This document shows, piece after piece, positions 8,213 to 47,700 of a stretch of DNA of 64,000 bases. The DNA is taken from contig NW_026889778.1 of NCBI RefSeq assembly GCF_033153115.1, positions 37,758,001 through 37,822,000 on the forward strand, written 5' to 3'. The position numbers and the translations under genes are program-made. The DNA is from Saccostrea echinata. Taxonomy: Eukaryota. The notes beneath the pieces are model-generated. The model was not told the origin of the DNA, ran no database searches, and was given only the letters and a program-made list of their open reading frames with translations. Within the stretch, counting starts at the first letter, position 1, and each line of letters starts with the position of its first letter.

Positions 8213-9283
8213 CTATACTTTTCTACCGCATAGTTTAATTGCTTCTACCTTGAAATGTGTATCAGTAAAAAAGTAAACAAATGGATTCAAAATCCCATTA
8301 ATGACTACAATATCTGGCAGGTATTCTTCAAAGATGTCTTCCATTTTAGAAAATTGTTGTCGTGGATAGAAATATCTTTTGGTGGCTTGGATAGTCTGAA
8401 ACAATGTGATTGTAACGAAGCTGGCTACCAAGAAAACAGTTACAAAAGCAAATGTTATCGCTATTCGTCTATTCTTTTCTTCCTCTGAATCTGTAGCCCG
8501 TCTCTTTGACTCTGGTTGATTCGCTTTCTCTTTTTGAACACTCTTTCCATCCAGTGTTCTGATGCCGCATTCTTCTTGTTCTTCTCCGGTACTGAGTTCT
8601 TTAGCCTTGCTTTTCATCTGCCTTTTTGTTATGGCTTTCTTAACAAGAGCATTTCGTATTTTAACTTGAAATATAACTACAAGTATAATACAAGTGAACG
8701 CAGCCACGAATACGAAAGCATAATATAGGAATGTTAAAACATTTCCATCATATTCGTTTTTTACATTGCACCGAGTAGCATTAATGTTTTCTACTTGTAC
8801 ATATCTTTTTCCATGAATCAAATAGACTGGGAATTGTATGAAAAAACCAATACAAATAACACTTAAACACATCACCTTAGATTGTTTCGTTGTAATTTGT
8901 GATTTGAAAGGTGTGCAAATTTTTCTGTATCTTTCGAAACTGATAAAAAAAGCAATCAGAAGAGAAGCCATCCCTACAGAGTTACCAAGATAGTGAGACA
9001 CCTTACATATCAAATCGCTCCCCCAGGCCACTTGATTGTAAACCGATATCATTCTGCTCATTTCTTTTGGAATGTGAGAAATACATAGAGAGAGATCGAC
9101 TACAGAAAGAAAAAGGACGAAGATCCTGTAATTTGAGGCTTGAGCAGTACGTGTTCGAAAGATATGTATAATTACACCATTGCCAACTATTCCTATGATG
9201 TTGAGAATGTAAGATATAGCTCCCAGTGGGGCTCTTTCTATTCTCCCTTCTACATTGTAATCCAGTGGTGGCTCATTTACCAT
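8213..9283 (-). CDS. Class A (rhodopsin-like) GPCR, orphan peptide-receptor-like, intronless CDS, 356 aa
   Basis: Seven hydrophobic segments; TM1 GN (GIVGNG), TM2 LSVVD, TM3 Cys and ERYRKICTP, ECL2 Cys, TM7 NPFVY. Start taken at ATG 9283; the upstream ORF part crosses a polypyrimidine-AG acceptor at ~9316 (5' UTR intron). Confidence 0.92.
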   Translation of the reverse strand: MVNEPPLDYNVEGRIERAPLGAISYILNIIGIVGNGVIIHIFRTRTAQASNYRIFVLFLSVVDLSLCISHIPKEMSRMISVYNQVAWGSDLICKVSHYLGNSVGMASLLIAFFISFERYRKICTPFKSQITTKQSKVMCLSVICIGFFIQFPVYLIHGKRYVQVENINATRCNVKNEYDGNVLTFLYYAFVFVAAFTCIILVVIFQVKIRNALVKKAITKRQMKSKAKELSTGEEQEECGIRTLDGKSVQKEKANQPESKRRATDSEEEKNRRIAITFAFVTVFLVASFVTITLFQTIQATKRYFYPRQQFSKMEDIFEEYLPDIVVINGILNPFVYFFTDTHFKVEAIKLCGRKV

Positions 9284-10237
9284 TCTGAACAATAATTTCG
9301 AGAAATGGAGATATCTGGAAAAATAAAAAAAAAATACTTGGAATGATGAATTGCAAATGATTAAAAGCATACCTTAAAATATTATATAAATATTAGTTTA
9401 GCATTGTTTCTGATATGTTTATATTGGCAATTTTATCTGGAATAGGAAGTTCTGCAGTTTTAACATATTTAAAGTTATCTACAAACTTTTTTGCATATCT
9501 TCAACAACTATCTGACATATTCTCCAATACTATCTTATATTTACCCTAAAACCTCATACAAAATGACGGTGTAAGTACTGATAAATTCATAAGTTTATCC
9601 TGAGTATTCAAATATTATTATAATTGTTACCCCTGATTGTTGAAGATGAATGGAATAAAATTCTACTTCGAAAAATGAACAGTTATTTTCTTATTTTTTG
9701 GCCACATTCCTCTGTTTGTCATGCAACAAATCTATTGAAAGTTTTACCCAGTGTCTTTTAAACGAGTACACGCATCTCAAGGGCGATACATAATGGGTAT
9801 TCCATGAGGAGGTGATGCATAGATCCGCCTGCTTTTCATATGGATATAGAAAAATTATTTATATGATATCTCCAATTTTGTTAAGGATAATCACCATGAG
9901 GATTCCAACAGATTCTTTGAAGGCTTTATCTTCAAAGACTAAATTGATATTGTCAATATGGAACTCAAGCATCTTTTAATATTAAGTTCAAAGTACTTGT
10001 GCGAAGGAGCAGAATGATTCTTAAGAAAGTCATTTTGAAAATGACCATCGATATGATGTGCAAATTTCCGAATTTCACTTTTTATTGAAGAAGCAATTGT
10101 TTACGGCGTCATAAAGCTAATTATCTCTAGGAATGGTTTTATAAACTGTGTGATATCATACATTTTGATGTTTGTGATTTTGGATTCAAATAAATTGAAA
10201 AATTCTCTAAGTTGTTTTCTTAGAGTTGTTCGAATGT

Positions 10238-17738: not shown

Positions 17739-20700
17739 TTTTTTTTTATTGTTATAACACTTTCATAGGTATATGTATACAACATAAATTTCTTCAATTG
17801 GTACAAGTTAACATCCGATTACACATACTCTGTCTTGTCTTAATCATATTTACACAGATCTACTTTTATACACTATGAAAGTTGTTTTGAGAGAGAAAAA
17901 AAAAACAAACATTAACAAAAAAAGGGGGGGTCAGCAAAAGAAAACAATTATTCTATATTACAAATAATACAAAATGATAAATAATCAATCTAATTTTTTC
18001 TTCTGAATCAAATAGGTAATAGGAAGTATATATATCTGTATTAATTTCAGCGCATCACAAATAGTTTTCCAATGCCTTTCATATTCCTCATATCTACAAC
18101 TTTTAAACAACAAAACTTTTTCAATAAAAATTCTATCTGTGATCCCCTTTAGTGCAGCGTTAACATTTTTTGGGGACCATTTTATATTTACTAGCAAAAA
18201 TAAATTGTTTTACAATAAGTATGAAAAGATTCTGATATTTATAAACATTCATATTTTCAAATTTACCAAATAGTATTGCTTGTCTATCAAAACTACAATG
18301 GATGTTAAACTTATTGAAAAGTCATTCTTCAATGGTACACCAGAGTTCTTTTGCATAAAAACATTCTACAAATAAATGATCAATTGTTTCTATGTCACTT
18401 TTGCAGAAAGTACATGCTGGAGAATCAATCAATTTAAGTCTAAATAGATAATAATTAGTTGGGATGATTTTATGTAATAGTTGAAATTGTAGCCATTGAA
18501 ATTTAGATTCTTTTGATATTTTGATAAAGGAAGTTGAAATATTTTATTCCAGTCTGCTTCGCAAAGGGAAACACTGTTTTCTTTCCATTTTTTGAGCGAG
18601 TTGACTGGCTCTTTCTTTTTACTTATAAATATATTGTACATGCCCTTACAACCTTTATCATGTTATAATACACATAAATGGGATATGGAATATGTGGTCC
18701 AATTGACTTTATATTTTCAATTTCATTATTGTTTATATTTTTCAGTCTATCTAAAACTGCAGTCCTAAGACCAATATAATCAATAAAATTTGTTTTCACT
18801 TTCAAGTTTATTAAGGAGTCAAAACTTATGAAACTACCATCATTGTTAAAGAGGTCAATAAGAAAAACAGTGCTTTCATTAAAATAGTTTTTCCAAAAGA
18901 AAGATTTATTATTAATTTTCATCTTTGGATTATTCCATATATCTTCAAAGAGCACATGTCTGTTGTTTTCTTGATTAATCCTAATTAGCCTTGCCCAGCT
19001 TGACAGAACTTCTTTCCAAAAAACATTATTTAATCTTATTGAAAGATTCAGAATGTAATCAGAACCCCTTATCCAAAGATTTCTTATGTCTACTTTTATA
19101 TCAGCTTCAAATAGTTTTACCCAGTTTGCATCTGAGTGAATAAGTCTTCTGATCCAACTTGATTTGAGAGCAGAAATGAATTCTGTATAATCAATCATTT
19201 TAAGACCTCCATATTTATAGTCCTGGATTATAACATTTTTCTTTACCTTATGAATTTTGCTACCCCATAAAAAATAATACATTTCTGTCTCAAACATCTT
19301 CAAAAATTCTGACTTAGGGTTTGGTAAAGTAAGAATTAAATGGTTTAATTAAGGTAATATTGAAGTTTTAATTACTGTTAACCTTCTAATTGGGGTAAAT
19401 TTCCTCAACCTCCACTTATTTAACAATGTTTTGATTTCATTTAGTTTTATGGAATAATTTAAATCAGGCATTTCATCCAAGTTTACTGAAAATTTTATTC
19501 CTAGAAGATCAAAATTTGTATTATCCCAATCCAGCTTCCACCTCGAGTGATGGAATACTTCCCTTGAGATTTTTTTTTTCTTCCGATCCATATCATTTTA
19601 GTTTTTTAAGAAATTTATTCTTAAACCTGATATATTGGCAAAGTAATCTAATTCTCGGAGAATACCATCCATGGATCTTGGTGAACCATCCGAGATAAGA
19701 GAGGTATCGTCAGCATATTGCGAAAGTTTGTACTCTTCACCTTCAATTGTTATACCTTTAATATCTTGATTATTTCGAATTAAGATTCCAAGAATTTCAG
19801 CACATAGCAAAAAGAGATATGGTGAGATTGGATCACCTTGTCTACAGCCTCTTTGGGGGAAAAGATAGTCTGAAGTAAATCCATTTTGTATAACACATGA
19901 TTTAATACCATTATAGAAGGTTCTAATCCAATTTATAAAAGAAGATCCAAAATTAAAAAAAGTCAAGGGTTTGATATATAAAATTCCAAGAGATTGTATC
20001 AAATGCTTTTTCAAAGTCAATTAACATCAATAGGCCAGGTATTTGAATATATTCTGTATAATGCATTATATCATATATCAGTCTAATATTCTACCCGATA
20101 AATCTACATGTACCTTTAATAAATCCAGTTTGGTCTCTGTTTATCAATTTGCCCAATTTAGTTTTCATTCGTTCAGCGATGCATCATGATGCTATTTTAT
20201 AAACCACATTTAAAAGACGAATGGATCGCCAATTTTTCAGAAATTGTTTTTCCTTTCCTACTTTCGGAATACACGTAATGATTCCCAATTTATTTGAATC
20301 TGAGAATTGAAGTAATTCATTTGAATTATTTATTACTCTTGTAATAAAGGAGCCAATATCTTTCCAGAGAAATTTGAAAAATTCACACGTAAATCCATCA
20401 GGTCCTGGACTTTTTTTCATTTTTCATTTGTTTTAAGAAATTAAAAACTTCAAGATTTGTTACTGGCCCTTCCAGACTGTTTGATTCCTCTCTACTTAAT
20501 TTAGGAATATCATATTGTTTAAGTCTTTCATAAATATTTTCTGACTCTACATTTTTCCTTTTCTTGCATAGGTTTTCGTAAAAAGCTTTTGTTTCGTTTA
20601 AAATCTCAGATTGAGAAGAGATAATTGATCCATTGTCCTTTTCTATTTTAGGTATTTGCTTACTCACATAGTTTCTTGATTCTAAACTTACAAAATATTT

Positions 20701-22052
20701 AGAGGGTTTTTCTCCTTCCTCAATCCATTTGACCTTTGACCTTATGCATTGACCTTTAAATCTCATATTCTTTATTTTTTCTACTTCTCTTTGTTTTTCT
20801 TCGAGTTCATTTATTGACTGATCTGTTAAATTCTGTTATTTCTCTTTCCAATTGTTGCTCTCTTTCAATAATTTTCTTTTTTTTATACGTTGAAAATGAA
20901 ATTGAAATTGACTTCCCTCTTATTTCCATTAACAAGACATCAAGAAAGAGTTGATCACTAATGGTAAATTGAATAGCATCATTCTCAAGGTAACTGATTT
21001 TTTCCATACTGGGCAGGAATATTGGATTTTAACCTCCTCAATCTTACATTTTATTTGTTCAACATATTATTTTTCATGTAGCAGAGAATTATTGAATTTC
21101 CAGAAACCATTTCCTTTTTAAATTCATTTAATTTACAGTGTAGTAGAACTGGAGAATGATCAGAACAGTAACTACTTTCAAACTTTACACAAGGCATCAT
21201 AGTTAGCATAGACTCAGACATCAGGAAAAAGTCAAGTCTAGCTTGTTTGAGTGGATTTTTTCGTCTCCAGGTAAACCTTTTTAAATTTGGATTATCTTCA
21301 CGAAATACATCCTTAAATTTAAAACATCCGTAAGCTTCATTACTTCAAGTTTTGATTTTGGGTTGTTTAAATTTTTGTAATTCATTGAATCCAAATCCTT
21401 ATCAAAAAGTAAATTAAAATCACCCCCTATAACAATATTTTGGGAAGAGTAAATCTCCTCTTTTTTATAAACTAAACTTAAGTAGAAATTAGGTGTGTCA
21501 GAGTTTGGACCATAAATATTTATTAGTAAAAAAGAGATATCCTCAATAAAAACATCCAAAATTAGAAGATTACCACCAGTATCCCTATATTCATTGATGA
21601 TTTTTAATTCACAGTTATTATTAAAAAGGATAGCAACTCCCCTTGAATTGGATTTGAATGAACTAAAAAAAAAGCTTTATATCCCCATTGTGTTCTTATA
21701 AAGTTTTCATCTTTTCCCACAAAATGAGTATCTTGTAAAAAATAAACATTATAATTCTTAGGTATGAAATTCTTAAGCACATCTCTTCTTTTATGAATGT
21801 TACCAAGGCCTTGACAGTTTACTGTAAGTATTTTTAGGTTGTTGTTCTTATTATGATCCATATATTTTTTAAAAGTATGGATGAAAATATTGCTGACCCC
21901 ATACAAGACAGAAACAAAAAAAAAAAACAAATAAATAAAAGATAACAAAAGTGTATATACAAAAGTATGTGGATTGTCTGAGAAAACATGCCTTGTTGTT
22001 TTTGAGAGTAGAAAGTTTATACCAAAAACATATTTAATTGATATTGCTAATT
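17739..22052 (-). mobile_element. L1/Tx1-clade non-LTR retrotransposon, 5'-truncated (no ORF1), ORF2 frameshifted
   Basis: APE endonuclease motifs (TVNCQGL, FLQDTH, NIYGPN, GGDFN), RT motifs (KSPGPDG, KNWRSI, GCRQGDPISPYLF, YADD), YGGLKM; poly(A) tail seen as T-run at 17739; exact 15-bp TSD gagcaagccaaattc at 17724-17738 and 22053-22067. Confidence 0.93.
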
Positions 22053-22955: not shown

Positions 22956-25900
22956 ATGGCCAAGAGTCAGAAGAAGAAGAAATTAGCAAAAAGCAATTCA
23001 GGTATAATATTTACCCACAACTATTTATAAATATGAAAATATCTCAAACAGGATTTGAAATGTTCATTCGGTTTGACTTAGATCCAGAATTATAATAATC
23101 TGTGTAGAACGAGAATACATGTCATTTCCATACTAGAAAAGTCTAATACTGTAATACTATAGTTAACATAGACAGATATTAAAATGTTACTTTTACCAAA
23201 TTGTACTGTGAAGTCATAATTATTCTTTGGGGAATAATATTCGTGGATTTCGTCGGTCACCCTTACCCACGAATTTGGATCCCCTCGAACAATGACCTTT
23301 GTCAATGTATTCATTAAATGTAATGTGTCCATTAAACTTTTTCATATACTAACTACCCTCGAAATTACGTCCATAAGAACCGGTGAAGTTTGGTTACTCA
23401 CGAACATTGACCCAAACTATTCCACGGTAACACCCCCCAAGAAAATCTGTATAAAATGACATCAATCTTATATATATAAGTTTCAGATTACCCAGCCTTT
23501 TTTGAAGAGGAATTGTGTTCACGTCTCGGTAGAGAGTGGTTTTCGTTCGGTACCCATATAGGCTTTGAACACAGTTCTCTGGTCCAGCTACAAGATCTGT
23601 TTCCTAATAGCCCACAAAAATGTGCCAAATACATGCTCCAGCAGTGGAATACCGTGGTATTGAAACATACATTGAAATGTGTTCCTTTGCTATACTTTGG
23701 ATTAAAGGAAATTAAACTTCTGGATTTAGCAGATGACCTTTTGAAAGCAGCAAATTCTGGTGAATATTTATGATTTATTTATATATAAACGCAATCTCGG
23801 CAAACTTTTAATTTGAAAAGAGAGAGAGAGAGAGAGAGAGAGATTCATTTTGTTACTGTCATTTGTAGATAAACCGGAGTCCAAACATGAGAGTATTTGG
23901 GATGATCTTCTTCAGGACTTAACAAAGATTTCGTTTAAAATGATGCCTGAACTTGATGAAAAAGGTTGATTATGGTTTTTTGAGTTTTTGACATTAAAGT
24001 TTCAATTGAAAATACGTTCAATTCTTCTTACTTCTTAGAATTAATAGTGCAAACTTTTCTCTTCAATTAATACAACTTTCATCTGATTTTTAAAACATTT
24101 TAGAGAGTAAACCCAAAGAGGGAGATACATATATCTTTAAGGACTGTAGTAATATTGTTATTGGACAAGGTTCAAAGCTCACTGTTAATCAGGCATATAA
24201 AGAATTAGCAAATCCGAAAGGTAAGTGTGTAATTTTATATATATATATATATATACATGTGTATAGAACTTGTTTAATGAGTCTGAAATGCATTGACTGT
24301 ATACAATTTTAGTCCATCCTTCATTTTTTCTTATGATACTGAAAGTAAGAATTTTTTATGACGTTTTGAAGGAAAACAGCAAAAGAAAGATGCTATTCTT
24401 CTCGGTATGCTTCAGTGTATACTGTACCCAAATGAAACTGAAGAGCCAAAGGAAATGAATCTGCAAAAGCTTGAGACTGCTTTCACCAAGCTCTTTGGAA
24501 CATTTATGACTGATAAGAAGTCTTTTTACCAAGTTTCAGGAATTAAGTTAAAATCCTTTTTGCAAAGATATCCCCTGAAGTTTAAGTGTACAAAAAGAAG
24601 ATCAGAATTCGCTGTTAAATTTATACCAGGAGATGATAAATGGCATGAGTGCTATGAGCTTAATATGCTTAGAAGCGCATCCCAGACCAAACAGTGTAGT
24701 GAAAATATTTCTAGATCATGTTCAGCTGTTTCTGATCATCAGTCAGATACTGAACATGAAGACGAAGATTCAACAGATGAAGGATGGGTCTACGTGAGGC
24801 ATAAAACCCATGAAAAGAACAAATCAAAGCACAAAGACGAGAATGATTTGTTTCCGCCTCTGCCTCGTAGCGGAAATATATCACAGAAACCCATTTTTCA
24901 AAAATCATATGCATGTGTAACATCATCCTCAAACAAAACTGCGAAAGATTACAGAAAACTTGAACAAACTACATCGCAATCTTCGAAGCCAGTATATATG
25001 CAGCAAAGAAAGGAGTACACAATACCGAGTAGTGGAACAATTGCTGATATAAAAGATCTCTTTGCCTATCTCAATAACTTTAAATCAGGTCACCACATTC
25101 TTTTTACTTCTACTCAGGACATGTCCGAAAATATTGAAGCGCTGGCCCTTGTTCCTTGGCTAAGCGTTTATGATTTTGATAAACATAGTCGAGTAGATGG
25201 GCTTTTATCAAGAATAGAGGACAGTATAAAACAACGGCGATCAATTCACGTTTGCACATGGAGGGATCGTCCTCATCTTTCCCACCATGGGACACAGTGG
25301 TGTTTGCTTCGCGGATCTGTGCAGGAGGCTGATAGTCGAACGCCTGACGATTATATACAATGGATGTTCTATATAAGAGAAAACTACGAAAAGCAGATTA
25401 TAGAATTAGCAAACATATCTGATAATTACTGCACATTAACGTTTGTTGTATTTTGGCCTTCAGATCTTGAGTCATGTCAATATATGTTCAAGGCACTTTC
25501 AAAAATAGCAGAACTCATTGAAAACCCTAACATTGTTATTTGCTGTAATGAAAGCAACGCATCGTCAGAGAGTAAAACTATGCTGGGACTTCTGAAACCA
25601 AAGCTTACGCTGATCAATGATTTTAAGGAAATACTACAGGGAATATCAAGTTTGCTTGGTGAAAAATACTCAATCCAAAGCGTAGAGTACAAGCTGCCAA
25701 CATTTGATAAAACAGATGTTCCACATATTGATGAATCAATGGCTGCCATATTCCGAGAAGACTTTGAAATTCTGTACTTGGACAACCCATATCGCAAAAC
25801 TAAAGAAAGCGAAATGACTATGGAAGAGTTACATGAAGAAGAGAAGCATTTTTATCGGGGAGGGAATCTCCACTGGTTTGCACTTTACCTTGCTGGGGCT

Positions 25901-28623
25901 GGTCATTTTGATGCAGAAAGAGATCTAACAGCAAATATTGTACGGAGAATAAAGCATTTCTTTTTAGAGCCATTTAAATCTGGTAAAATTACAATATATC
26001 ACGCCCCGGGTGCAGGTGGATCCACTCTTGGACAAAGAGTTTTATGGGAATTGAGATCCATGACTCCCTGTGGACAAGTACAAATGAATTCCAGGACATT
26101 GGTTCAGGACTTAGTTGACAGAATAAAAATATTATTTGAGAAAACAAACTTACCTGTAGTATTGCTTATTGATGGAGAAGACCAGCAAAGGTTTACATAT
26201 TTGCATAAATTTTTAGAGAGAGCTCATTTGATTGTGATATTATTACACATCAAACGTTGCACACAACCAAAGAAAACCATAAGTTTGAAGGAAACCGAAT
26301 TCTGGTTACCTGGGACAGTTTCGTCAAATGAAGCAAACAAACTTGGAATCAAATTTTCAAATCAGTGTGACTCACCGGAAAAGAAAGATCAAATAGACAG
26401 TCTAGTAAGAGATGTTTCTGATGGTAAAGAGCACCTTATGTACGAATTCGGAATGGTAGCATTCTTGTCAGAGTTTAAAGGTGTACGTTCTTTTGTGCGT
26501 GGATACCTTCAGCTTGATAAAAATCCCACTGAAAAGCTCCTCTCGTGGCAGAAGATTATAGGATACCTTTCCCTGGTTTACTACTATGGTCAAACATCAA
26601 TGCCTTGCCAGTTCTTTTCAACTCTTTTGGAGTTACCACCAAATTATAATGTTACCATGGAGGATTTTCCCTTCCCTGTTCAGATGTTCATTGTTTCTTG
26701 CTCAAATGAAAACAAACGCAATACCATACGAATATGTCACTATACAGTTGCAAAGGAAATATTAGAGCATATGCTTACTTGGAACAAAAAGAAGATGGGT
26801 AAATGTGATAGCTCTGGGTTGAGTATTACAGCTCGATACGAACTCTACGAATTTTTGACCATGTTCTTGGAAGACATTAAAGCAAAGAAAATTAAAAGCA
26901 TTGTTAAGTCTGGAATCATTGCAGATATTTTAAGAAGAACTCTTATTTTCCGAGATAACCAAGATGTCGGTGACAATGAAGTGCCTGGAAGAAGGAAACT
27001 GTCTCGTCTGATGGCAGATATTGAATGCAAAGCGCCTTACATGGAAAGGATTGACATCCTAAAGCGCCTGACTGATATCTTCCCAGAGGATGCTAATTTT
27101 CATGCGCATCTTGGAAGAATGTATTCAATATGTAGACCAGAGGATGAAAAGAAAGCTGAAAATTGTTTCATCCAAGCAGTTGATTTATGTAGAAAGAAGA
27201 AAGCAGGGAAATCTTATGAAAACTTGGATGACAGTGCAAAACATACACTTAAGCATGTTTATCACATGTTTGGTATGTTTTACTTGCAAAGAATTACGAA
27301 GTATACAGGAAAATCCCACGGAGATAAACCAGAAATTCTTACACCACAGGATAATTTCGATAGAAAATAAGGGAACTACTACAAGACGCTAAGGATGCTT
27401 GCTACTATTTCTTTGAGACAAGAGAATTGACAAATTTGATTGGATATGAAGAAGCCTATGGATACGTAGGAGAAATAGCAACAAGGTTAAAAATCTGTGA
27501 ATTTATTTACAGGCATATGACTTTCAGGGAATTTGAAGAGTTTCTAGAAGTTTCACCTGATTCAGAAATAGTCAACTTCGTGAAGGATAGCATCACAACA
27601 ATTCTTGAGTTGTTTCTGCAATGCTACGGATGCGTAGATTCTGAAGACCTGCCGCCTGGGTTTTTCAGATATATTTATTGGTACAACGCACTCTTCAAAT
27701 CCCAGGCAAAAGAACTGGAAAGGCTGGACATAACAGAAGATATTTACTCTCGGCGCTTACATGTAGCTGTTATTAAACTGAAATATGGAAAGGATGAATC
27801 CCTTGGAACCTTAGAAAGGATATCCTCAAAATCAGACATTGAAGAGATTGTGCGTATTTGTGAACAGAATTTCAAGGATGCTGACCGTGGCGGATTTACT
27901 CCAATTAGAAGCGCAATTGACCTTGAATACAAAGATTGGCTCAATGCCATTAGACATGAAAAATTTTCAGAAATCTATTGCACTGCAGACGTCTTACGGA
28001 GAGTTCGTCATTGGCATGATACTTTGAAAAGTCCGAGTTCAAAGTTCTACTTGTTCATTCTTCTCAGCATACTTGGCTTTGGATACTCAGAAGAAACATC
28101 ACCAAATGATGAAATGCTGAGGGAAGCAAACGAGTTACTAGAACAGCTGAGGAAAGGAACGAAAGCTTTAGCAAAACCAAGAAGTCCGAAAGAATGGTAT
28201 GGTAAAGGACCAGGAATAAAATGCCTCATACCAAGTTGGAAAGTCAGGCATAGCGGTGAAAATCGAGTAAACGCCGGGGACTCTAGTACCACGCATTTAG
28301 CAGTATTCAAAGGGACCATTACACGACCGCATACACAAAGGCAAACTGGATATATCAAAATGGATCTTGGGGACAATAAATTTACCGTTCGAGTGTTTTT
28401 CATTCCAGTGAGAACTAAAGAACCGCTTGTGGGAAGTCGATACGCTGGAGAGAGAGTTGAATTTGTCTTGGCCTTCACATACGCTGATGGATATGAAGCA
28501 TACAACGTTGCTTTGTTAAAGAAATATCATTGTTTCAACTGCAATAGAAAAGTCGAAATTACAAGTGACAAGTTCTCTGTACAATGCAAATGTGGAAGGG
28601 TAGTAACCAAGTCGGATAATTGA
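22956..28623 (+). CDS. SAMD9/SAMD9L-like STAND NTPase with N-terminal death domain and RHIM-like motif; ~1594 aa if the frameshift at ~27365 is corrected
   Basis: Coding exons 22956-23001, 23487-23759, 23869-23964, 24104-24220, 24372-28623; all introns GT-AG, phase 1, and joining in frame. SAMD9-family motifs: WLSVYDFD (SIR2-like), Walker A HAPGAGGSTLGQRVLWELR, Walker B LPVVLLIDGE, TPR-like FHAHLGRMY, OB-fold ERVEFVLAFTYADGYEAYNV. Confidence 0.88.
23207..23427. mobile_element. MITE in an intron of the SAMD9-like gene
   Basis: ta-ctgtgaa ... tccacgg-ta ends with inward-facing ttcgtgg / ccacgaa motifs; similar element at ~41004-41224. Confidence 0.5.
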
Positions 28624-34375: not shown

Positions 34376-36316
34376 CTACAGAGTTGTCATTTTAGTGACC
34401 TTTGTGGATCTTTCTTCACTGTCAACATCCGTGTTAACTGACACCACAGAGATGGTCTGAGCCATCTCTCCTGTCCCACAAAACTCCTTCATGGACATCA
34501 CTCCAAACTTCACCTGCTCCACTCCCATGGCAACCCCAGCCCTGACACGGTTGGCTGCAATGCTTCCTGAGTCTTTGATGGTTGTCAAGTACTGGGAACC
34601 AGATTCTCTTATGGAATGCACTCGATTGCGGACTTTCTCCATCTTCTTTTCCAAAGTTATTTTCACTTCATTTAAGGTATAGCTGGTGTTGCTTCGACCT
34701 TTCTCAAGGTACTCTTCTGGAGTAGGTGTTGCACATTTCTTTGGAGATGACCTAGGTGTCCTAGCAACTGGAGAATTTACAGGGACTTTAAGAAGGGATT
34801 CCTCATTTTGGTAAGAATCATCGTAGGAATCTTGGTCATCCAGACTCCTGCTCGATGAATTCTGATCATCCGTATAAACTTCAAAAGTGTAATCCATGGC
34901 GACCTTGGGTTTTTCTCTTTGTTCAACAAGAACACAAGAGCATTTACAAAAATGTATTGCACAAAGTTTAATCATTCCAACAAGCAAACCAAACACCAAA
35001 GCAGTTAGAGCACTCACACCTCCATATACCATGCCAACCCATTCAATGGTAAAAAGTTTTGTAACAGCAGTTAAGGTTAGGTTTGCTGTATCATTTCCAT
35101 GACTGTTAATCAGCACACAGGTAAAAGTCCCATTGAAAACCCCTCGAAAGTTGGTAAATGTCAAAGTATTGTTCTCTGTTATGAACAGTTCTGAAAAATC
35201 TTCTATACTATGCTTGTATTTCAAATGTGACAGAGTTGTTATGTTTATTTGTTCCAGCATTTCTTGGTTATACTTATGGCTTATTTTTACTCCCTGAGGT
35301 GTTATCCAGTATCCAATAGCATAGATTTCAGGTGATGCTCTGCAATGAATGGATCCACTGGAACTGACAGGAACTTCCAGAGAGTTAGTTACTTTATCAA
35401 TGTGAGGAATATCACACTTTAAATCATTCTGCGTCAAATCTTGTAATTTTGTTCCCCGCATTCTGAAAGGAGAGTAGCAGTCTAGCAAGTCTGGATTGGA
35501 AACTCTTAGTTTTTGCTGTGTCAGGAATTCTAGGAAGTTCTCCAATTCACAAGAGCAGTCCCATGGGTTTCCATGCAATCCAATTACTGTGTAATTGTTT
35601 ATTTCTGATACAACCTTCCCTGATAGACTTGTTAAAGCATTCTCACTTAATTGAAGGGTTTTCAAATTAGTCAAGTTCTGAAAGGTGCCCTCTGCAATCC
35701 AGTGTATATTATTGTTTCTCAGATCTAACTCTTCTAGAAAATACAGTGGATTAAATAGACCCAGAGGAAAAGAATAAATCTTGTTGAATCTTAAATGAAG
35801 TGTTTTCAAATTAGCTAATCCTTTAAAAGCATCTTTTGGAAAAGTCTGTAATTTGTTTTCACTAAGTGAAAGAATCTTCAAGTTCTTAAACTCACTAAAA
35901 GCACCTGAGGAAATTTTCACAATATCATTCGAACTGAGATCTAATTCTTCAAGTAGTCCTGGGTTTCCTACATGAAGCATGTCTATTGTGGTTAATGCAT
36001 TTCTGCTGAGATCAAGTATTTGAAGTCCTTTTAAGGACTGGACTTCAAGAGGGAATGATTTCAAACCCCCAAATATGTTCAGATGTCTAACAGTGAAAGT
36101 TTGGGGGATGGACTGGATAGAGAATCCCTCATAATAAGAGTTGCAGGATGCCTCTTGTTTAGAATGCTCACAAACACAGAACTGAGGGCATTTTGGGCTT
36201 GAAGAGTTTTTCTTTGAAGCATGCGTAATGACATCCTTAATGTATACAGACTGGCTGATCATATGTTTGTTCCATGCTGCTATCAAAAAGACAACAGCAA
36301 GAACTTTCTGTAGCAT
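34376..36316 (-). CDS. LRR-Ig single-pass membrane protein (LRRN-like), 646 aa, intronless CDS
   Basis: Signal peptide; LRRNT CPQFCVC; about 7 LxxLxLxxN repeats; LRRCT NPWDCSC; Ig domain (HCRA..YW..FTC); TM helix VGMVYGG..LLVGMI; long cytoplasmic tail. Confidence 0.93.
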   Translation of the reverse strand: MLQKVLAVVFLIAAWNKHMISQSVYIKDVITHASKKNSSSPKCPQFCVCEHSKQEASCNSYYEGFSIQSIPQTFTVRHLNIFGGLKSFPLEVQSLKGLQILDLSRNALTTIDMLHVGNPGLLEELDLSSNDIVKISSGAFSEFKNLKILSLSENKLQTFPKDAFKGLANLKTLHLRFNKIYSFPLGLFNPLYFLEELDLRNNNIHWIAEGTFQNLTNLKTLQLSENALTSLSGKVVSEINNYTVIGLHGNPWDCSCELENFLEFLTQQKLRVSNPDLLDCYSPFRMRGTKLQDLTQNDLKCDIPHIDKVTNSLEVPVSSSGSIHCRASPEIYAIGYWITPQGVKISHKYNQEMLEQINITTLSHLKYKHSIEDFSELFITENNTLTFTNFRGVFNGTFTCVLINSHGNDTANLTLTAVTKLFTIEWVGMVYGGVSALTALVFGLLVGMIKLCAIHFCKCSCVLVEQREKPKVAMDYTFEVYTDDQNSSSRSLDDQDSYDDSYQNEESLLKVPVNSPVARTPRSSPKKCATPTPEEYLEKGRSNTSYTLNEVKITLEKKMEKVRNRVHSIRESGSQYLTTIKDSGSIAANRVRAGVAMGVEQVKFGVMSMKEFCGTGEMAQTISVVSVNTDVDSEERSTKVTKMTTL

Positions 36317-41700: not shown

Positions 41701-44700
41701 ACTGTGACAGAATATCACTTTTAATCAATAAATATATTACAGTATTTTACTGTTGAAAATGTAATAAATAGAGGATATTCAATGTTTTGTAGATTTCACG
41801 AGTGCGAAGCACGAGTGAAAATATAAAAAAAAATCCTGTCTCACGAGTGAAATAAATTCCATATTCATCTACAAAACATTGAATTTTTGTCTATTACGTT
41901 TTTTGTAATTTTCCCTTTGCCTCTTTCTTTTCTTAACACAATGTCATAGGCTTCACATCATAGTTGAGCGGTTGAGACGTCATAGCTTACCATTGAAAAC
42001 ATTACATAGCATGGATTTTAGCAACTTATTTGGGAAGAAATTTGCAGTTTTAGCTCTATCAAGATGGTTAATTACTATCTCTATCTTATGACAGGCCAGA
42101 AATTATTTTTTACTTACTTTGATATCCTTTCACGCTGTGAGAGAATATCATTTTGGTATCCTTTCACACTGTGAGAGAATATCACTTTTATTCATTATAT
42201 AAATCACAGTATTTCACTGTTGAAAATGTAATAAATTGTATGATATGTTGTTTTCGTGTCTTAAAGTATGAAAAATACACTGCTAAAGACACAATAATTA
42301 AAACATGCATCATCTGTAAGAAATGTGATACTCTGTGTTTTAAAGTGATACGAGGATGTTTTTTTTTTACTATGTAGGTTTACTCTTTGTGGCTTCCACT
42401 CTAGGATTCTGTAGATATGATGATGTGGATTTGATCAGGGTATGTCATATGTATATATGTGTACTATGAAATCTGTAATTCCAAACAAAGTTTTTTGTAT
42501 CATTATTGATTTAATGGCAATTAAATTGACAAGTAGATTCAATCCTATAGTATATAAATGATGATATAGGAACAGGGCTCTACATTAATGTTTGTCCAAT
42601 TGTCTGTGTTTTGTTCATTTTGTGATTGGATTAGTCAATTTCCACAAATACTTGTTCAACTGGACAAGTAAACTTTTTCCCATAATACGTTCCATTTCCA
42701 TTAGTGAACTCTTCAAAATTAGAGGCGCGTTTGGTCGTCTGACTGGGACAGCATGGCATTGCAGATAATAAAAAACATGCCAATCTCAATCCAATTTTAA
42801 ATGTTAAATGTATTAGTCATTCCAGTTAAAGAATAGAAGAACTAAAAAACATGTAAAGAGAGCAAGAACCCTAAATTTATCATCCATTAATAAAAAATAC
42901 GACTTTTCCGAGGCATGTGTATTGTATTTAGATGTACCATAAGATAAATAGATACATACGATCAACAATAGATATACATGTAAATTGATATCGTTGTCAT
43001 TCCTACACTTGATGTATATAAAGTCCACAACAATAAAGTATTTCATTTGCATTTTCTTAGGAATTGTTCATCGACATTTAACATATTGTTTACATGTTTA
43101 TGTTACGTTTGTCCCAGAAATCCCGCGAGATTTGTCCGTTTTCCGACTTTTTCACAAAAGAGCGCACTAAGAAGTATAACTCTTCCATAGTGGAAATAGA
43201 ACGTATTGAATGGTATAAATATCGTGATTTTTTTTTTGAATCATGAAAATCAAATACGAAACATTCTTAAGGGCTTAGTTTTGTCTCAACCTATATCCCT
43301 AAGGGATGAGCACCATTGAGACTAGGTTAAAGACAGCAGTAGTTTATGTTTTATATCAGAAATGTTTTTAATTTCATGATCAAAAAGGTTTTTTTAAGTC
43401 AATAATATCAGTCTTGATAATGAAATTCTCTACAATTTTCTTTATATCTGTTCGGAATCAGACAGGTAAAAAATGCATTCAGACAAGTAACATTTGTTGA
43501 CAACTTCTCCAATGGACAAGTCAATGTTGAGCCCTGAGGTCTGGTTGTTGCACAGTATTTACTTGATGATGATGAACTCTTTTAAAATACTTTAACTAGG
43601 GGGTTACCACTGGGAGTAAGCAGGATGCCTTTATGGACAAACTGATAGACCTGGTGTGTATCAAGGATGCTGCAGATGACCCTGACAATAAGTCAATGAG
43701 AAACCCAAATGTGGTCAGGTAAAAAGTACAGGACTGATGTGATCACTGGTCAGGTTTGGATAAAGGTGTTAGGTAAGGTTGTTAGGAGTATAGGTGTGTC
43801 AGCTTAAGCTGTAAGTAGTACAGGTGAAGTCAGGTAAAGCAGTCATTGGTACAGGTGAGGTCAGGTAGGCTTTAAGAATTGCAGGTGTGTGTGTCAGGCA
43901 AGACAGTAAGGAGTATAGATTTGTCACTCAGGCAAAGCAGTGTGGAGTATGGATTGTCAGGTAAAGCAGTAAGGAATATGGATTTGTCTGGTAAAGCAAT
44001 AAGGAGTATGGATTTGTCAGGTAAAGCAATAAGGAGTATGGATTTGTCAGGTAAAGCAATAAGGAGTATGGATTTGTGTGGTAAAGCAGTAACTGAAGGA
44101 GTATGGATTGTCAGGTAAAGCAATAAGGAGTATGGATTTGCCAGGTAAAGCAATAAGGAGTATGGATTTGTCTGGTAAAGCAGTAAGGAGTATGGATTTG
44201 TCTGGTAAAGCAATAAGGAGTATGGATTTGTCTGGTAAAGCAGTAAGGAGTATGGATTTGTCTGGTAAAGCAGTAAGGAGAATGGATTGTCAGGTAAAGC
44301 AGTAAGGAGTATGAATTTGTCTAGTAAAGCAATAAGGATTTGTCTTGTAAAGCAATAAGGAGTATGGATTTGTCAGGTAAAGCAATAAGGATTATGGATT
44401 TGTCAGTTAAAGCAATAAGGAGTATGGATTTGTCTGGTAAAGCAATAAGGAGTATGGATTTGTCAGGAATAGCAATAAGGAGTATGGGTTTGTCTTGTAA
44501 AGCAGTAAGGAGTATGGATTTATCAGGTAAAGCAATAAGGAGTATGGATTTGTCAGGAATAGCAATAAGGAGTATGGGTTTGTCTTGTAAAGCAGTAAGG
44601 AGTATGGATTTATCAGGTAAAGCAATAAGGAGTATGGATTTGCCAGGTAAAGCAATAAAGAGTATGGATTGTCTGGTAAAGCAATAAGGAGTATGGATTT

Positions 44701-47700
44701 GCCAGGTGAAGCAATAAGGAGTATGGATTTGTCTGGTAAAGCAATAAGGAGTATGGATTGTCAGGTAAAGCAGTAAGGAGTATGGATTGTCAGTTAAAGC
44801 AATAAGGAGTATGGATTTGTCAGGTAAAGCAATAATGAGTATGGATTTGTCTTGTAAAGCAGTAAGGAGTATAGATTTGTCAGTTAAAGCAATAAGGAGT
44901 ATGGATTTGTCTGGTAAAGCAATAATGAGTATGGATTTGTCTTGTAAAGCAGTAAGGAGTATAGATTTGTCAGTTAAAGCAGTAAGGAGTATGGATTTGT
45001 CTGGTAAAGCAATAAGGAGTATGGATTTGTCAGGTAAAGCAATAAGAAGTATGGATTTGGATTTGTCAGGTAAAGCAATAAGGAGTATGGATTTGTCAGG
45101 TAAAGCAGTAAGGAGTACATGTATGAATTTGTCTGGTAAAGCAATAAGGATTTGTCAGGTAAAGCAATAAGGAGTATGGATTTGTCAGGTAAAGCAGTAA
45201 GGAGTATGGATTTGTCAGGTAAAGCAATAAGGAGTATGGATACGATTGTCAGGTCCTGTTGTGGTTTGGTTAGACCAAGGGTTAGACTGTTAAGGTATTA
45301 GGGAGTACAGGCTCTTAGGCCATAAAACTGAGATCACTTTTCAGTCTCAGTCTCACTTTTACAAAAGAAAATAACTGTGGAAAAATGAAAATTAAGATCG
45401 AATGTGAAAACATCCAAGTTTGTGGGTTTAGATTAGGTATAGACAGGTAATATATTATCTGAGTAAAAGAGCCGATTACCTTTTATTATATGCAATGCAC
45501 ATAGTGCTTTATAAATTCGTATGGCTACATTCACATATCAACATCAGTTTTGTGAGTTTGACTTAACGAAATCTGATATCATCAAAATAAGTAATTACAT
45601 ATCAAACCCCTTTTCTTTTTTGTACTGAAAATTAGTTCTGTTTTGTAACAAAGTATGCTGTAGACAAAAAAGATGTAGACACTGTACATGAAATAATATA
45701 TTTTTTATTTACTAAATACTACTCTATCATAAATTGCCTAATCTCTATTCTGTATATTGAATTATTTCATATCATACTGAGTGTGTCTTGTTATAAGTAA
45801 ATACAAGGGCACTGCAAAGTGGAGCATCCCCTCCCAAGAGAACATTGATCCAGATGTAAATTATTGTTTGCATGCTCACTCACTCATAGTCACCTGCACA
45901 CATATCCCCTCCAATTTCAATGCGAGGGGATAATAATCTAATGGAAGCAGGACATGAGGTGCTGGATGTATTGTGTTAAAAAAAAAAAATTCCCAATTTT
46001 CAGCGAGTCCATGCCACTTGAGGATCAGTTTCAACATGACTCGCATTTGATGAAAACTCTAGTCAGCCAAGAAAAAGTGGATTCCATGCTCAATCCTAGA
46101 CTCTCCCTCCTGCCGCCAGATTTACAAAGGCAGTATGAGGTCGCTATGGTGGAAAAAGGACTGGACAAAGACAGGTGTTTTATATATATATAATATATAT
46201 AAAATAAGTAGTAGAGACATATTCTATGTGCTCATGTACATCAGGATTTTGAACACTGTTGAATGGAGGCAAAAAACAACATTGTTTAAATCCTATAAAT
46301 TTGACATATACTTACAGTTAAACTTGTCTAATCCAGATGTTGTGTTTTCCAAAATCTTGTCCAATAAGATGTTAACTTAAGTCCCTTTCAGTAAATTCAA
46401 CTGTCATTAAAATGTTGTCTAATCCAGAATGTTTTCTCATCCGACCAATTTCCATGGAACCATTGATGTTCGGATTATAGACAACTTTTACTGTATATAG
46501 TTAAATTACGTTACTATTCATAAAATAACATTCCATTCCATTTCAGGCCACCTAAGCCTGATATACAGAGTCTAATGGAGTCTGCAGAAAAACTGTCACA
46601 GGATCTTCAGAGGCAACAGGAAATTCTCCGAGAAGTCAACAAAACTGTAAGATTTTGCCCATTAAACCAAATATTTCCCAATTATTATTTCCATTCTTAA
46701 AGGAGATTTCATGTAAAACAGAGCCCACATATTCTTGTCTAAAATGTTAGTCTAATCTTGATAAAATATTCCTAAATAGTGATGATTATTACATTGGAAT
46801 TATTTTTTGCTCTAAATATTATGTGAAATGTGAAAATGTCTCAAGGGAGATAACTTTTACCTTACTAGCACAATTTATAAAAATTTCTCATTCTACATGT
46901 GAAGTCATTCTTTGCAATCAGATGCAATATTAATATATTCATTTAGGTGGGATAAGCACACATAATTATAGATGAAAAGTACAAGATAAATATGAAAAAC
47001 TTTTGGAGTTAAAAAATTTCAAATATATGTAGATCTATCATGTTAAAATTTAGCAAAAGAAACAAAAGCCCTGCTGATTTGAAGTGCTTTAAATCTCTGA
47101 ACTACCAGCTGGATAGTTACAAAGAGACTGACAGCACGTTTGTAATGAAGTTATGTTCATTAATTGTGTGATGTGCTATTCCCTATTTACCTTGATGTCT
47201 TATTTCATTTCAGTTTATGTACGAGTCTCCAGATCCATCTCGAGGAGAGATTGTGAGTAAGACAATGAGTCTGGTGCTCTCCGAGTTATCTCAGCTCGTG
47301 ACAGGATTCACCTACTGCTATGAGAACGAGATGAGTCACTGGTGTAACAAATCTCCTCCCGTACTCAATGAATTAGGCCCAGCATTCAAGAGAGTTTATA
47401 ATTTACTGCAGACCTTTGTCAAGGTGTGACCAGGAATTGGATTTTTCTCTTTTTTTTTTCATTTTAAAAAAATGTTGAAATTTCTACATATAGACAAGCT
47501 TATTACTCATTTCTGGTTGGCTTCCTTTCTAAATATACACTGGCATTGATCCTTGTTTATTAAATACATATAGCCAAAAGTTGTGTTACACACTGAAAAA
47601 TAACCCAGGATGTAAACTTAGATGGGTTTTTTTCAGCTTTTTAATTCTCAGAGGAGTTTTTATGTTGCAATTTAGTATATTTTTGTTTTAAGGACCCTCT

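Follow-up and report, generated by a model that had tools for sequence, protein, structure and literature searches.

The RHIM, or RIP homotypic interaction motif (Pfam PF12721), of RIPK1, RIPK3, ZBP1, TRIF and viral decoys is about 20 residues long and carries a tetrad, (I/V)-Q-(I/V/L/C)-G, described as strongly conserved among RHIMs of cellular as well as viral proteins (PMC7375649, PMC13506858); the core of varicella zoster virus ORF20, for example, reads IQIG. The present analysis concerns a 117-bp exon with a RHIM-like motif in a SAMD9-family gene of the oyster Saccostrea echinata. The gene lies in a stretch of 64,000 nucleotides (contig NW_026889778.1, positions 37,758,001 to 37,822,000 of assembly GCF_033153115.1), referred to below as the window, in which position 1 is the first letter. 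The exon belongs to a family that is conserved in Saccostrea, Ostrea and Magallana and is probably RHIM-related, as judged from sequence profiles. The family falls into three groups: group A comprises the window gene and Ostrea edulis P0041, both with the core IVIG, group B consists of exons in the same place in S. cucullata and Magallana gigas, and group C is represented upstream of a second SAMD9-like gene in the S. echinata genome.

The oyster motif resembles the RHIM in its length of about 20 residues, in its position in a putatively flexible region beside a death domain, as in RIPK1, and in the skeleton h-x-h-x-x-(C/S)-S-x-h-x-h-G-x-x-x-x-h (h, hydrophobic), with group C members and the metagenomic protein P0017 carrying xQIG-D-H-N cores. 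It differs in that the Gln of the tetrad is Val in the window gene and Ala in group B, the Asn of the RHIM ladder is Ser in the window copy, and scores against the Pfam profile are below the cut-off or absent. Further, the oyster host is a SAMD9-family nucleoside triphosphatase (NTPase) rather than a kinase or a nucleic-acid sensor, and the oyster motif is followed by a conserved A-x-x-E-L...P-K tail.

Further systems come close to the locus. RHIMs occur at the adaptor position of NACHT proteins of the STAND class (signal transduction ATPases with numerous domains) in amphioxus, Branchiostoma (Kajava et al. 2014, PMC4262963). As in the oysters, the end of a metazoan STAND NTPase that serves as effector or adaptor there bears a RHIM-type motif in the usual place of a six-helix death fold; however, the oyster NTPase is SAMD9-like, a death domain co-occurs with the motif in groups A and B, and the oyster core is divergent. 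The cryptic RHIM (cRHIM) of Drosophila IMD, PGRP-LC/LE and Pirk has a Gln-less consensus summarised as VxxG (PMC13506858). It is an invertebrate immune amyloid motif that likewise departs from the mammalian tetrad and shows that a Gln-less RHIM relative can work, although its host proteins are different and the likeness is to its published description. Invertebrate SAMD9 proteins with N-termini of the DEATH superfamily have also been described (Mekhedov, Makarova, Koonin 2017, PMC5445408). These share with the oyster gene the SAMD9-like core and, where vertebrates have the SAM domain, a death-fold adaptor at the N-terminus, but the domains listed are CARD, Death, Pyrin and FIIND, with no RHIM-type motif, whereas in the oysters the motif exon comes after a death domain (groups A and B) or takes its place (group C).

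In fungi and bacteria, motifs of nucleotide-binding leucine-rich repeat (NLR) systems such as HET-s/NWD2, PP, sigma and BASS are likewise short beta-arch motifs located N-terminally in a STAND protein, and the HET-s motif is regarded as a relative of the RHIM (PMC4262963). In bivalves, RIPK1 homologues carry both a RHIM and a death domain (PMC12119088). In the literature searched, no paper was found that describes a motif of the RHIM type in a SAMD9-family protein, and those naming both leave them unlinked. Since there are precedents both for RHIMs on STAND proteins of metazoans and for SAMD9 relatives with death-fold N-termini, the oyster exon is not a new kind of arrangement.

Structure of the window gene

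Five exons were read for the gene (Table 1), and all comparisons were run exon by exon. The motif exon, exon 4, had been proposed in an earlier note on this DNA as an exon absent from the open reading frame (ORF) track, and it is upheld by its splice sites, phase and in-frame junctions. In the program-made ORF list, no + strand ORF of at least 60 residues lies over it. Its acceptor is ttttaaaacattttag/AG (ttttag/AG, 24102-24103) and a consensus donor, AAAG/gtaagt, stands at 24221. Read in the frame from 24103 (24103-24219), it translates as ESKPKEGDTYIFKDCSNIVIGQGSKLTVNQAYKELANPK; the first Glu is a split codon formed by G at 23964 and AG at 24104-24105. Exon 4 is in frame with the upstream pair of death-domain exons and with the downstream 4.25-kb SAMD9-like exon, and its junction with the latter, GKQQKKDAILLG, matches P0041 and P0002. 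As exons 2, 3 and 4 are all of phase 1-1, each could be skipped or inserted with the frame kept. The translation also agrees with the IVIG core and the change of the downstream Asn to Ser as they had been read before.

Table 1. Coordinates of the exons of the window gene and of other features discussed in the text (window positions unless a contig or locus is named)
Feature	Position	Strand	Description	Identity to O. edulis P0041
Exon 1	22956-23001	+	Start codon, then basic N-terminus MAKSQKKKKLAKSNS; phase 1 at its end	67% (to its N-terminus)
Exon 2	23487-23759	+	273 bp, phase 1-1; divergent death domain; 43% identity to P0003	76%
Exon 3	23869-23964	+	96 bp, phase 1-1; post-death-domain segment KPESKHESIWDDLLQDLTKISF... 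into an acidic linker; splice sites read from sequence; P0003 residues 112-134 aligned	74%
Exon 4	24104-24220	+	117 bp, phase 1-1; RHIM-like motif exon; core YIFKDCSNIVIGQGSKLTVNQAY at about 24130-24198	82%
Exon 5	24372-28623	+	SAMD9-like body; ORFs 24407-27370 and 27427-28623	80% before the frameshift, 90% after it
Group C motif exon	L026:8502-8630 (G000:C29:17014501-17014629)		129 bp, same phase as exon 4
RHIM plus death-domain gene (C62)	G000:C62:4204892-4204948 (-); L044:6611-7021 and L044:4869-5087		Pfam-positive RHIM, then death-domain exons
Rhodopsin-family G-protein-coupled receptor	8216-9370	-	Single exon; 7tm_1, 98 bits
Leucine-rich repeat protein	34379-36316	-	Single exon; LRR_8, 112 bits
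HEXIM homologue	52762-53715	-	Single exon; 73 bits

The body encoded by exon 5 consists, in order, of a winged-helix/LOTUS-like domain, a low-complexity stretch, a SIR2-like region, a P-loop STAND NTPase, a helical/TPR-like region and a C-terminal OB-like region with a zinc ribbon. A phmmer search of the PDB matched human SAMD9 chains (E 4e-11, residues 229-603), the exon 5 ORF contains the Walker A motif HAPGAGGSTLGQ (GAGGST), and among its database relatives are proteins of scallop and pearl oyster that bear the name SAMD9-like. Closest of all is S. cucullata P0001 (91% identity), an orthologue whose model begins downstream of the short N-terminal exons. By its SIR2-like and P-loop homology and its Walker A motif, the window gene is a SAMD9-family STAND-like NTPase; the score of P0011 against nSTAND_NTPase5, 23.9 bits, is under the cut-off of that profile. 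The motif exon is thus attached to a STAND protein, as had been claimed, and follows directly after the death domain.

The death domain itself is divergent. Exon 2 matches Pfam Death (PF00531) weakly but over its full length, at 16.2 bits (E 0.011) and profile positions 7-82 of 86, and S. cucullata P0003 scores 16.8 bits; the cut-off is 22.6 bits in both cases. The first folded domain past the motif exon (window 24372-24700; residues 65-155 of P0016, a group C transcript) is predicted to be a winged helix, weakly LOTUS/ROQ-like (Foldseek E 0.2-0.5, TM score to the target about 0.65). An AlbA domain was not detected in the group C body by Pfam and PDB searches, a result from which nothing is concluded about the presence or loss of a nuclease domain.

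Conservation of the exon in oysters

Conservation in orthologues, on which the earlier note had made its reading depend, was found for the motif. The O. edulis orthologue P0041, a RefSeq protein of 1603 residues without a frameshift, has the same five-part N-terminus, and its motif exon, ETKAKDGDTYVFKDCSNIVIGQGSKLTVNQAYTELENPR, lies between the same neighbours with the same junctions. Its core is identical to that of the window gene at 25 of 26 residues, compared with about 75-80% identity in the flanking exons and about 80% over the protein.

Group B, which consists of S. cucullata P0003 and the M. gigas transcripts P0053, P0055 and P0058, carries ...NCSG(I/V)AIG(D/K)N... in the same place after the death domain. 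The group C exon of S. echinata (Table 1) reads YIEIRKSSAFQIGDHNVI, has the same ...PK/G junction and contains a more canonical version of the motif (AFQIGDHNVI). Its orthologues in two other oysters, SSGIVVGDQNVV and SRGIVFGDHNVV, come from spliced transcript contigs, and the group C cores are FQIG, IVVG or IVFG. The group C transcripts join the motif exon on one side to a basic first exon of 19 residues and on the other to the gene body; the death domain is absent, leaving the motif as the sole N-terminal module. In all three groups, and across Saccostrea, Ostrea and Magallana, the motif occupies the N-terminal adaptor position of SAMD9-like genes. No motif exon was present in the upstream regions of five other SAMD9-like paralogues, and a word-based search with the N-terminus of P0003 returned P0003 itself as its only match.

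The eight family sequences align without internal gaps on the skeleton h-x-h-x-x-(C/S)-(S/N)-x-h-x-h-G-x-x-x-x-h, after which comes A-x-x-(E/R)-L...P-K. The conserved features are the alternating hydrophobic pattern and the Gly. The Gln of the tetrad, on the other hand, is not conserved among the group C orthologues (FQIG vs IVVG) and is Ala in group B across two genera, which makes the family independent of Gln.

Relation of the motif to the RHIM

A convincing RHIM is encoded once in the same genome, on contig C62, where IHIHNSKNVQVGNNNVMVV scores 23.7-25.6 bits against the Pfam profile and is followed by a death-domain exon with 24 bits (Table 1). No kinase domain was found within about 13 kb upstream of this RHIM exon, and the gene is accordingly called a RHIM plus death-domain gene rather than RIPK1. 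With this RHIM as the reference, motif profiles were compared by hhalign, with 100 column shuffles for each test. The profile of the whole family (eight sequences) aligned over 31 columns with a score of 29.6 and a probability of 93%, a score that none of the 100 shuffles reached (null 7.2±1.4, maximum 11.5). Groups B and C taken separately each scored 21.3, with probabilities of 61% and 60%, respectively, and again 0 of 100 shuffles did as well. Two other Pfam RHIM matches in the genome, C33:2538140-2538187 and C61:1161709-1161756 (identical SMFNCQSVQIGSYCVS, 23.5 bits), lie in duplicated DNA with no recognisable exons; they are probably not genes and were dropped as references.

A two-row profile built from the window exon and the group C exon of S. 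echinata was also searched in 1.84 billion proteins and gave six matches. Two of these, P0013 and P0018, were translated tandem repeats and were discarded. The search returned the group C orthologues together with metagenomic P0017 at E 2.5e-5, a protein whose own best Pfam match is RHIM (15.7 bits) and whose three repeats read SSNFQVGEHNV, CSNFQIGDHNT and NGFQVGPYNQ. P0017 and P0033 are metagenome proteins from the Joint Genome Institute with three RHIM-like repeats and, probably, a transmembrane segment at the N-terminus. Unstructured regions are said to flank RHIMs (PMC4262963); in an AlphaFold2 model of the group C transcript P0016, built on a shallow alignment, the motif has a predicted local distance difference test (pLDDT) score of 39-47 and the adjoining domain (residues 65-155) one of 80-93.

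On this evidence the exon family is probably RHIM-related. The RHIM-like reading of the earlier note is thus partly supported: it probably holds for the family, whose profile aligns to the oyster RHIM, and is not supported for the window copy by itself, which is the most divergent member of the family. Several observations count against calling the window motif a RHIM. Its tetrad is I-V-I-G, with Val in place of the Gln of the accepted tetrad. Its flanks, upstream Y-I-F and downstream L-T-V, are present, but the Asn position, which is Asn in groups B and C, is occupied by Ser. Against Pfam RHIM, for which the gathering cut-off is 20 bits, groups A and B gave no match (window exon and P0003, E up to 10), so that the profile check proposed earlier for the window exon came out negative, and the sole match of the group C exon was sub-threshold (13.6 bits, E 0.052). 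In the hhalign test, group A scored 14.4 with a probability of 6.6%, a score equalled or exceeded by 1 of 100 shuffles. PDB searches by phmmer with the window and group C exons returned no RHIM chain. Taken alone, the window copy thus falls short of RHIM membership: it lacks the Gln, the Asn and a Pfam match, and its profile score was marginal. Further, conservation does not stop where a typical RHIM ends but runs on into TVNQAY.EL, as a structured element of another kind would also explain; one M. gigas RefSeq isoform lacks the exon, and the motif may hence be dispensable; and the window gene carries a 1-bp frameshift.

The pattern itself can also arise by chance. In the relaxed form used in the earlier note it comes up 0.77 times in a shuffled 64-kb window read in six frames, and the window motif taken alone is, as a sequence, not beyond chance; it is conservation and context that provide the non-chance evidence. 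A Pfam scan of the window exon gave only a chance match to CxC7 (E 0.055), and a query of the ESM Atlas with the exon gave no usable match. The best PDB match in phmmer, to the FGxGTKLTV strand of immunoglobulin lambda and T-cell receptor J segments (window 24139-24189, FKDCSNIVIGQGSKLTVN; VIGQGSKLTVN vs VFGGGTKLTV; E 0.026), was judged coincidental.

Collectively, the conservation and the profile evidence favour a joint reading with three parts, which we regard as having an even chance of being right as a whole. First, the 117-bp exon, a genuine and frame-neutral coding exon of an oyster SAMD9-family STAND NTPase gene, would be selectively maintained. Second, it would encode a divergent RHIM-class motif, that is, a beta-arch-type homotypic module of about 20 residues (h-x-h-x-x-C-S-x-h-x-h-G-x-x-x-x-h-T-h) with a short helix-prone tail. 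Third, the motif would sit in a flexible linker between the N-terminal death domain and the winged-helix/SIR2-like/P-loop/TPR/OB body.

The strongest alternative, which is quite possible though not what we would expect, is that the exon is a conserved linker element that forms no amyloid. It could dock intramolecularly as a strand plus helix on the death domain, the winged helix or the NTPase and so serve autoinhibition, or act as a short linear motif for some other partner, in which case its likeness to the RHIM would be left over from ancestry or have arisen by convergence of beta-prone sequence. The absence of both hallmark residues, Gln and Asn, from group A and of Gln from group B and two of the three group C orthologues fits this alternative, as does the failure of groups A and B to match Pfam RHIM. 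With its 26 residues and.EL..P[KR], the conserved block exceeds a RHIM core in length, short beta-motifs recur by chance, as the J-segment match and the frequency of the relaxed pattern illustrate, and the isoform without the exon points the same way. However, the likeness of the family profile to a bona fide RHIM is far beyond the shuffle null, and group C has no N-terminal module other than the motif, which lies at the site where an adaptor domain usually stands. Further, the AlphaFold2 model of P0016, shallow as its alignment is, does not pack the motif on a neighbouring domain, and the h-x-h-G skeleton and its spacing are constant in the three groups while exposed positions vary, as expected of a stacking beta-arch.

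In the isoform in question, M. gigas P0048, precisely the exon's 38 residues are missing, which fits the skipping of a cassette exon. P0048 is, however, only 94-96% identical to the exon-including P0053, P0055 and P0058 and has G instead of D as the junction residue, so that it may derive from another allele or copy.

Proposed mode of action

If the exon does encode a divergent RHIM-class module, ligand-driven oligomerisation of the STAND core would gather several copies of the death domain and of the motif. The clustered motifs could then stack into an ordered cross-beta assembly of the RHIM type while the death domains form a helical oligomer, and both assemblies would draw in downstream adaptors equipped with the same pair of modules. 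The C62 RHIM plus death-domain gene is a candidate partner for such death-domain/RHIM-like sensors. In groups A and B the motif would work alongside a death domain, and in group C it would stand in for one.

The sequence comparisons show the exon, its conservation, its family and the likeness of the family profile to the RHIM; amyloid formation by the motif, though plausible, and the partner are inferred. In the RIPK1-RIPK3 core, the two hydrophobic residues of the tetrad face inward and the Gln faces outward. With the Gln pointing outwards, its replacement by Val or Ala would be tolerable. The window version, with Val for the tetrad Gln and Ser for the ladder Asn, may represent a lineage-specific and more hydrophobic variant, or one tuned for self-assembly only.

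A wider proposal, which we consider unlikely though conceivable, is that the oyster SAMD9 family is wired into RHIM/death-domain signalling through a lineage-specific, Gln-less RHIM class that a frame-neutral cassette exon encodes. Whether an amyloid platform is nucleated would then depend on the exon being included or skipped, and the IVIG, IAIG and FQIG/IVVG cores would serve as specificity codes against cross-seeding between paralogues.

Integrity of the window gene

An A-run at 27364-27368 (+ strand) is one base short relative to the orthologues. The resulting -1 frameshift splits exon 5 into two frames, with residues 1-943 of P0001 aligning in frame 2 and the rest of the alignment, residues 943-1361, continuing in frame 1. 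It is decidedly improbable that the window gene is on this account a decaying pseudogene, with an exon that was functional ancestrally and is inactive in this genome. The frameshift would indeed cut the protein before its last ~420 residues, and no identical S. echinata protein was found among database matches of compatible length. Yet the A-run is the sole disruption in 4.7 kb of coding sequence, all splice sites of the gene are intact, and the part after the shift is free of stops and is 97.9% identical to S. cucullata and 90% to O. edulis. These features fit an error of assembly in a homopolymer or a very recent or polymorphic lesion, and an assembly error or very recent change is more likely than old decay, as far as the sequence can tell.

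Finally, the earlier note drew an analogy to fungal and bacterial NLR-amyloid pairs. A reading along these lines, in which the motif would template an identical motif on a separate executioner encoded nearby, is very improbable, for it has in its favour only the likeness of a STAND protein with a short N-terminal beta-motif (PMC4262963), whereas the defining feature of such pairs is that a second effector gene, usually an adjacent one, carries a matching motif, and none was found: the family hidden Markov model detected no second instance in the 64-kb window (next best 8.6 bits, E 0.2), and genome-wide searches with the exon and with the two-row profile, which scored the best candidates alone and were of limited sensitivity, returned only the two SAMD9-like exons.

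Other features of the window

The window holds three further single-exon genes (Table 1). About 1 kb upstream of exon 1 lies a degraded retroelement of the long interspersed nuclear element type (18623-21948, - strand) with fragments of endonuclease and reverse-transcriptase ORFs, of which related copies occur at other places in the genome (L029-L035). A minisatellite with a 30-bp unit, TGTCAGGTAAAGCAATAAGGAGTATGGATT, repeated about 45 times, spans 43892-45241 and accounts for the spike in GC skew at 44-46 kb.

Significance for the SAMD9 family

Human SAMD9 and SAMD9L are antiviral and disease genes. The invertebrate relatives of SAMD9 are numerous and, to our knowledge, unstudied, and we know of no account of how the family signals downstream outside vertebrates. 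If the reading of the exon as a divergent RHIM-class module is true, a conserved RHIM-related module at the adaptor end would offer a concrete and testable path by which a SAMD9-like sensor of a mollusc could feed into RHIM/death-domain signalling. The sequences counted as RHIM-type motifs would also become more varied, as the change of the tetrad Gln to Val or Ala would have been kept for long across genera. For annotation, the locus is a reminder that short exons of this type are often missed. Motifs of such a type travel as small symmetric exons and are thereby open to gain, loss or skipping.

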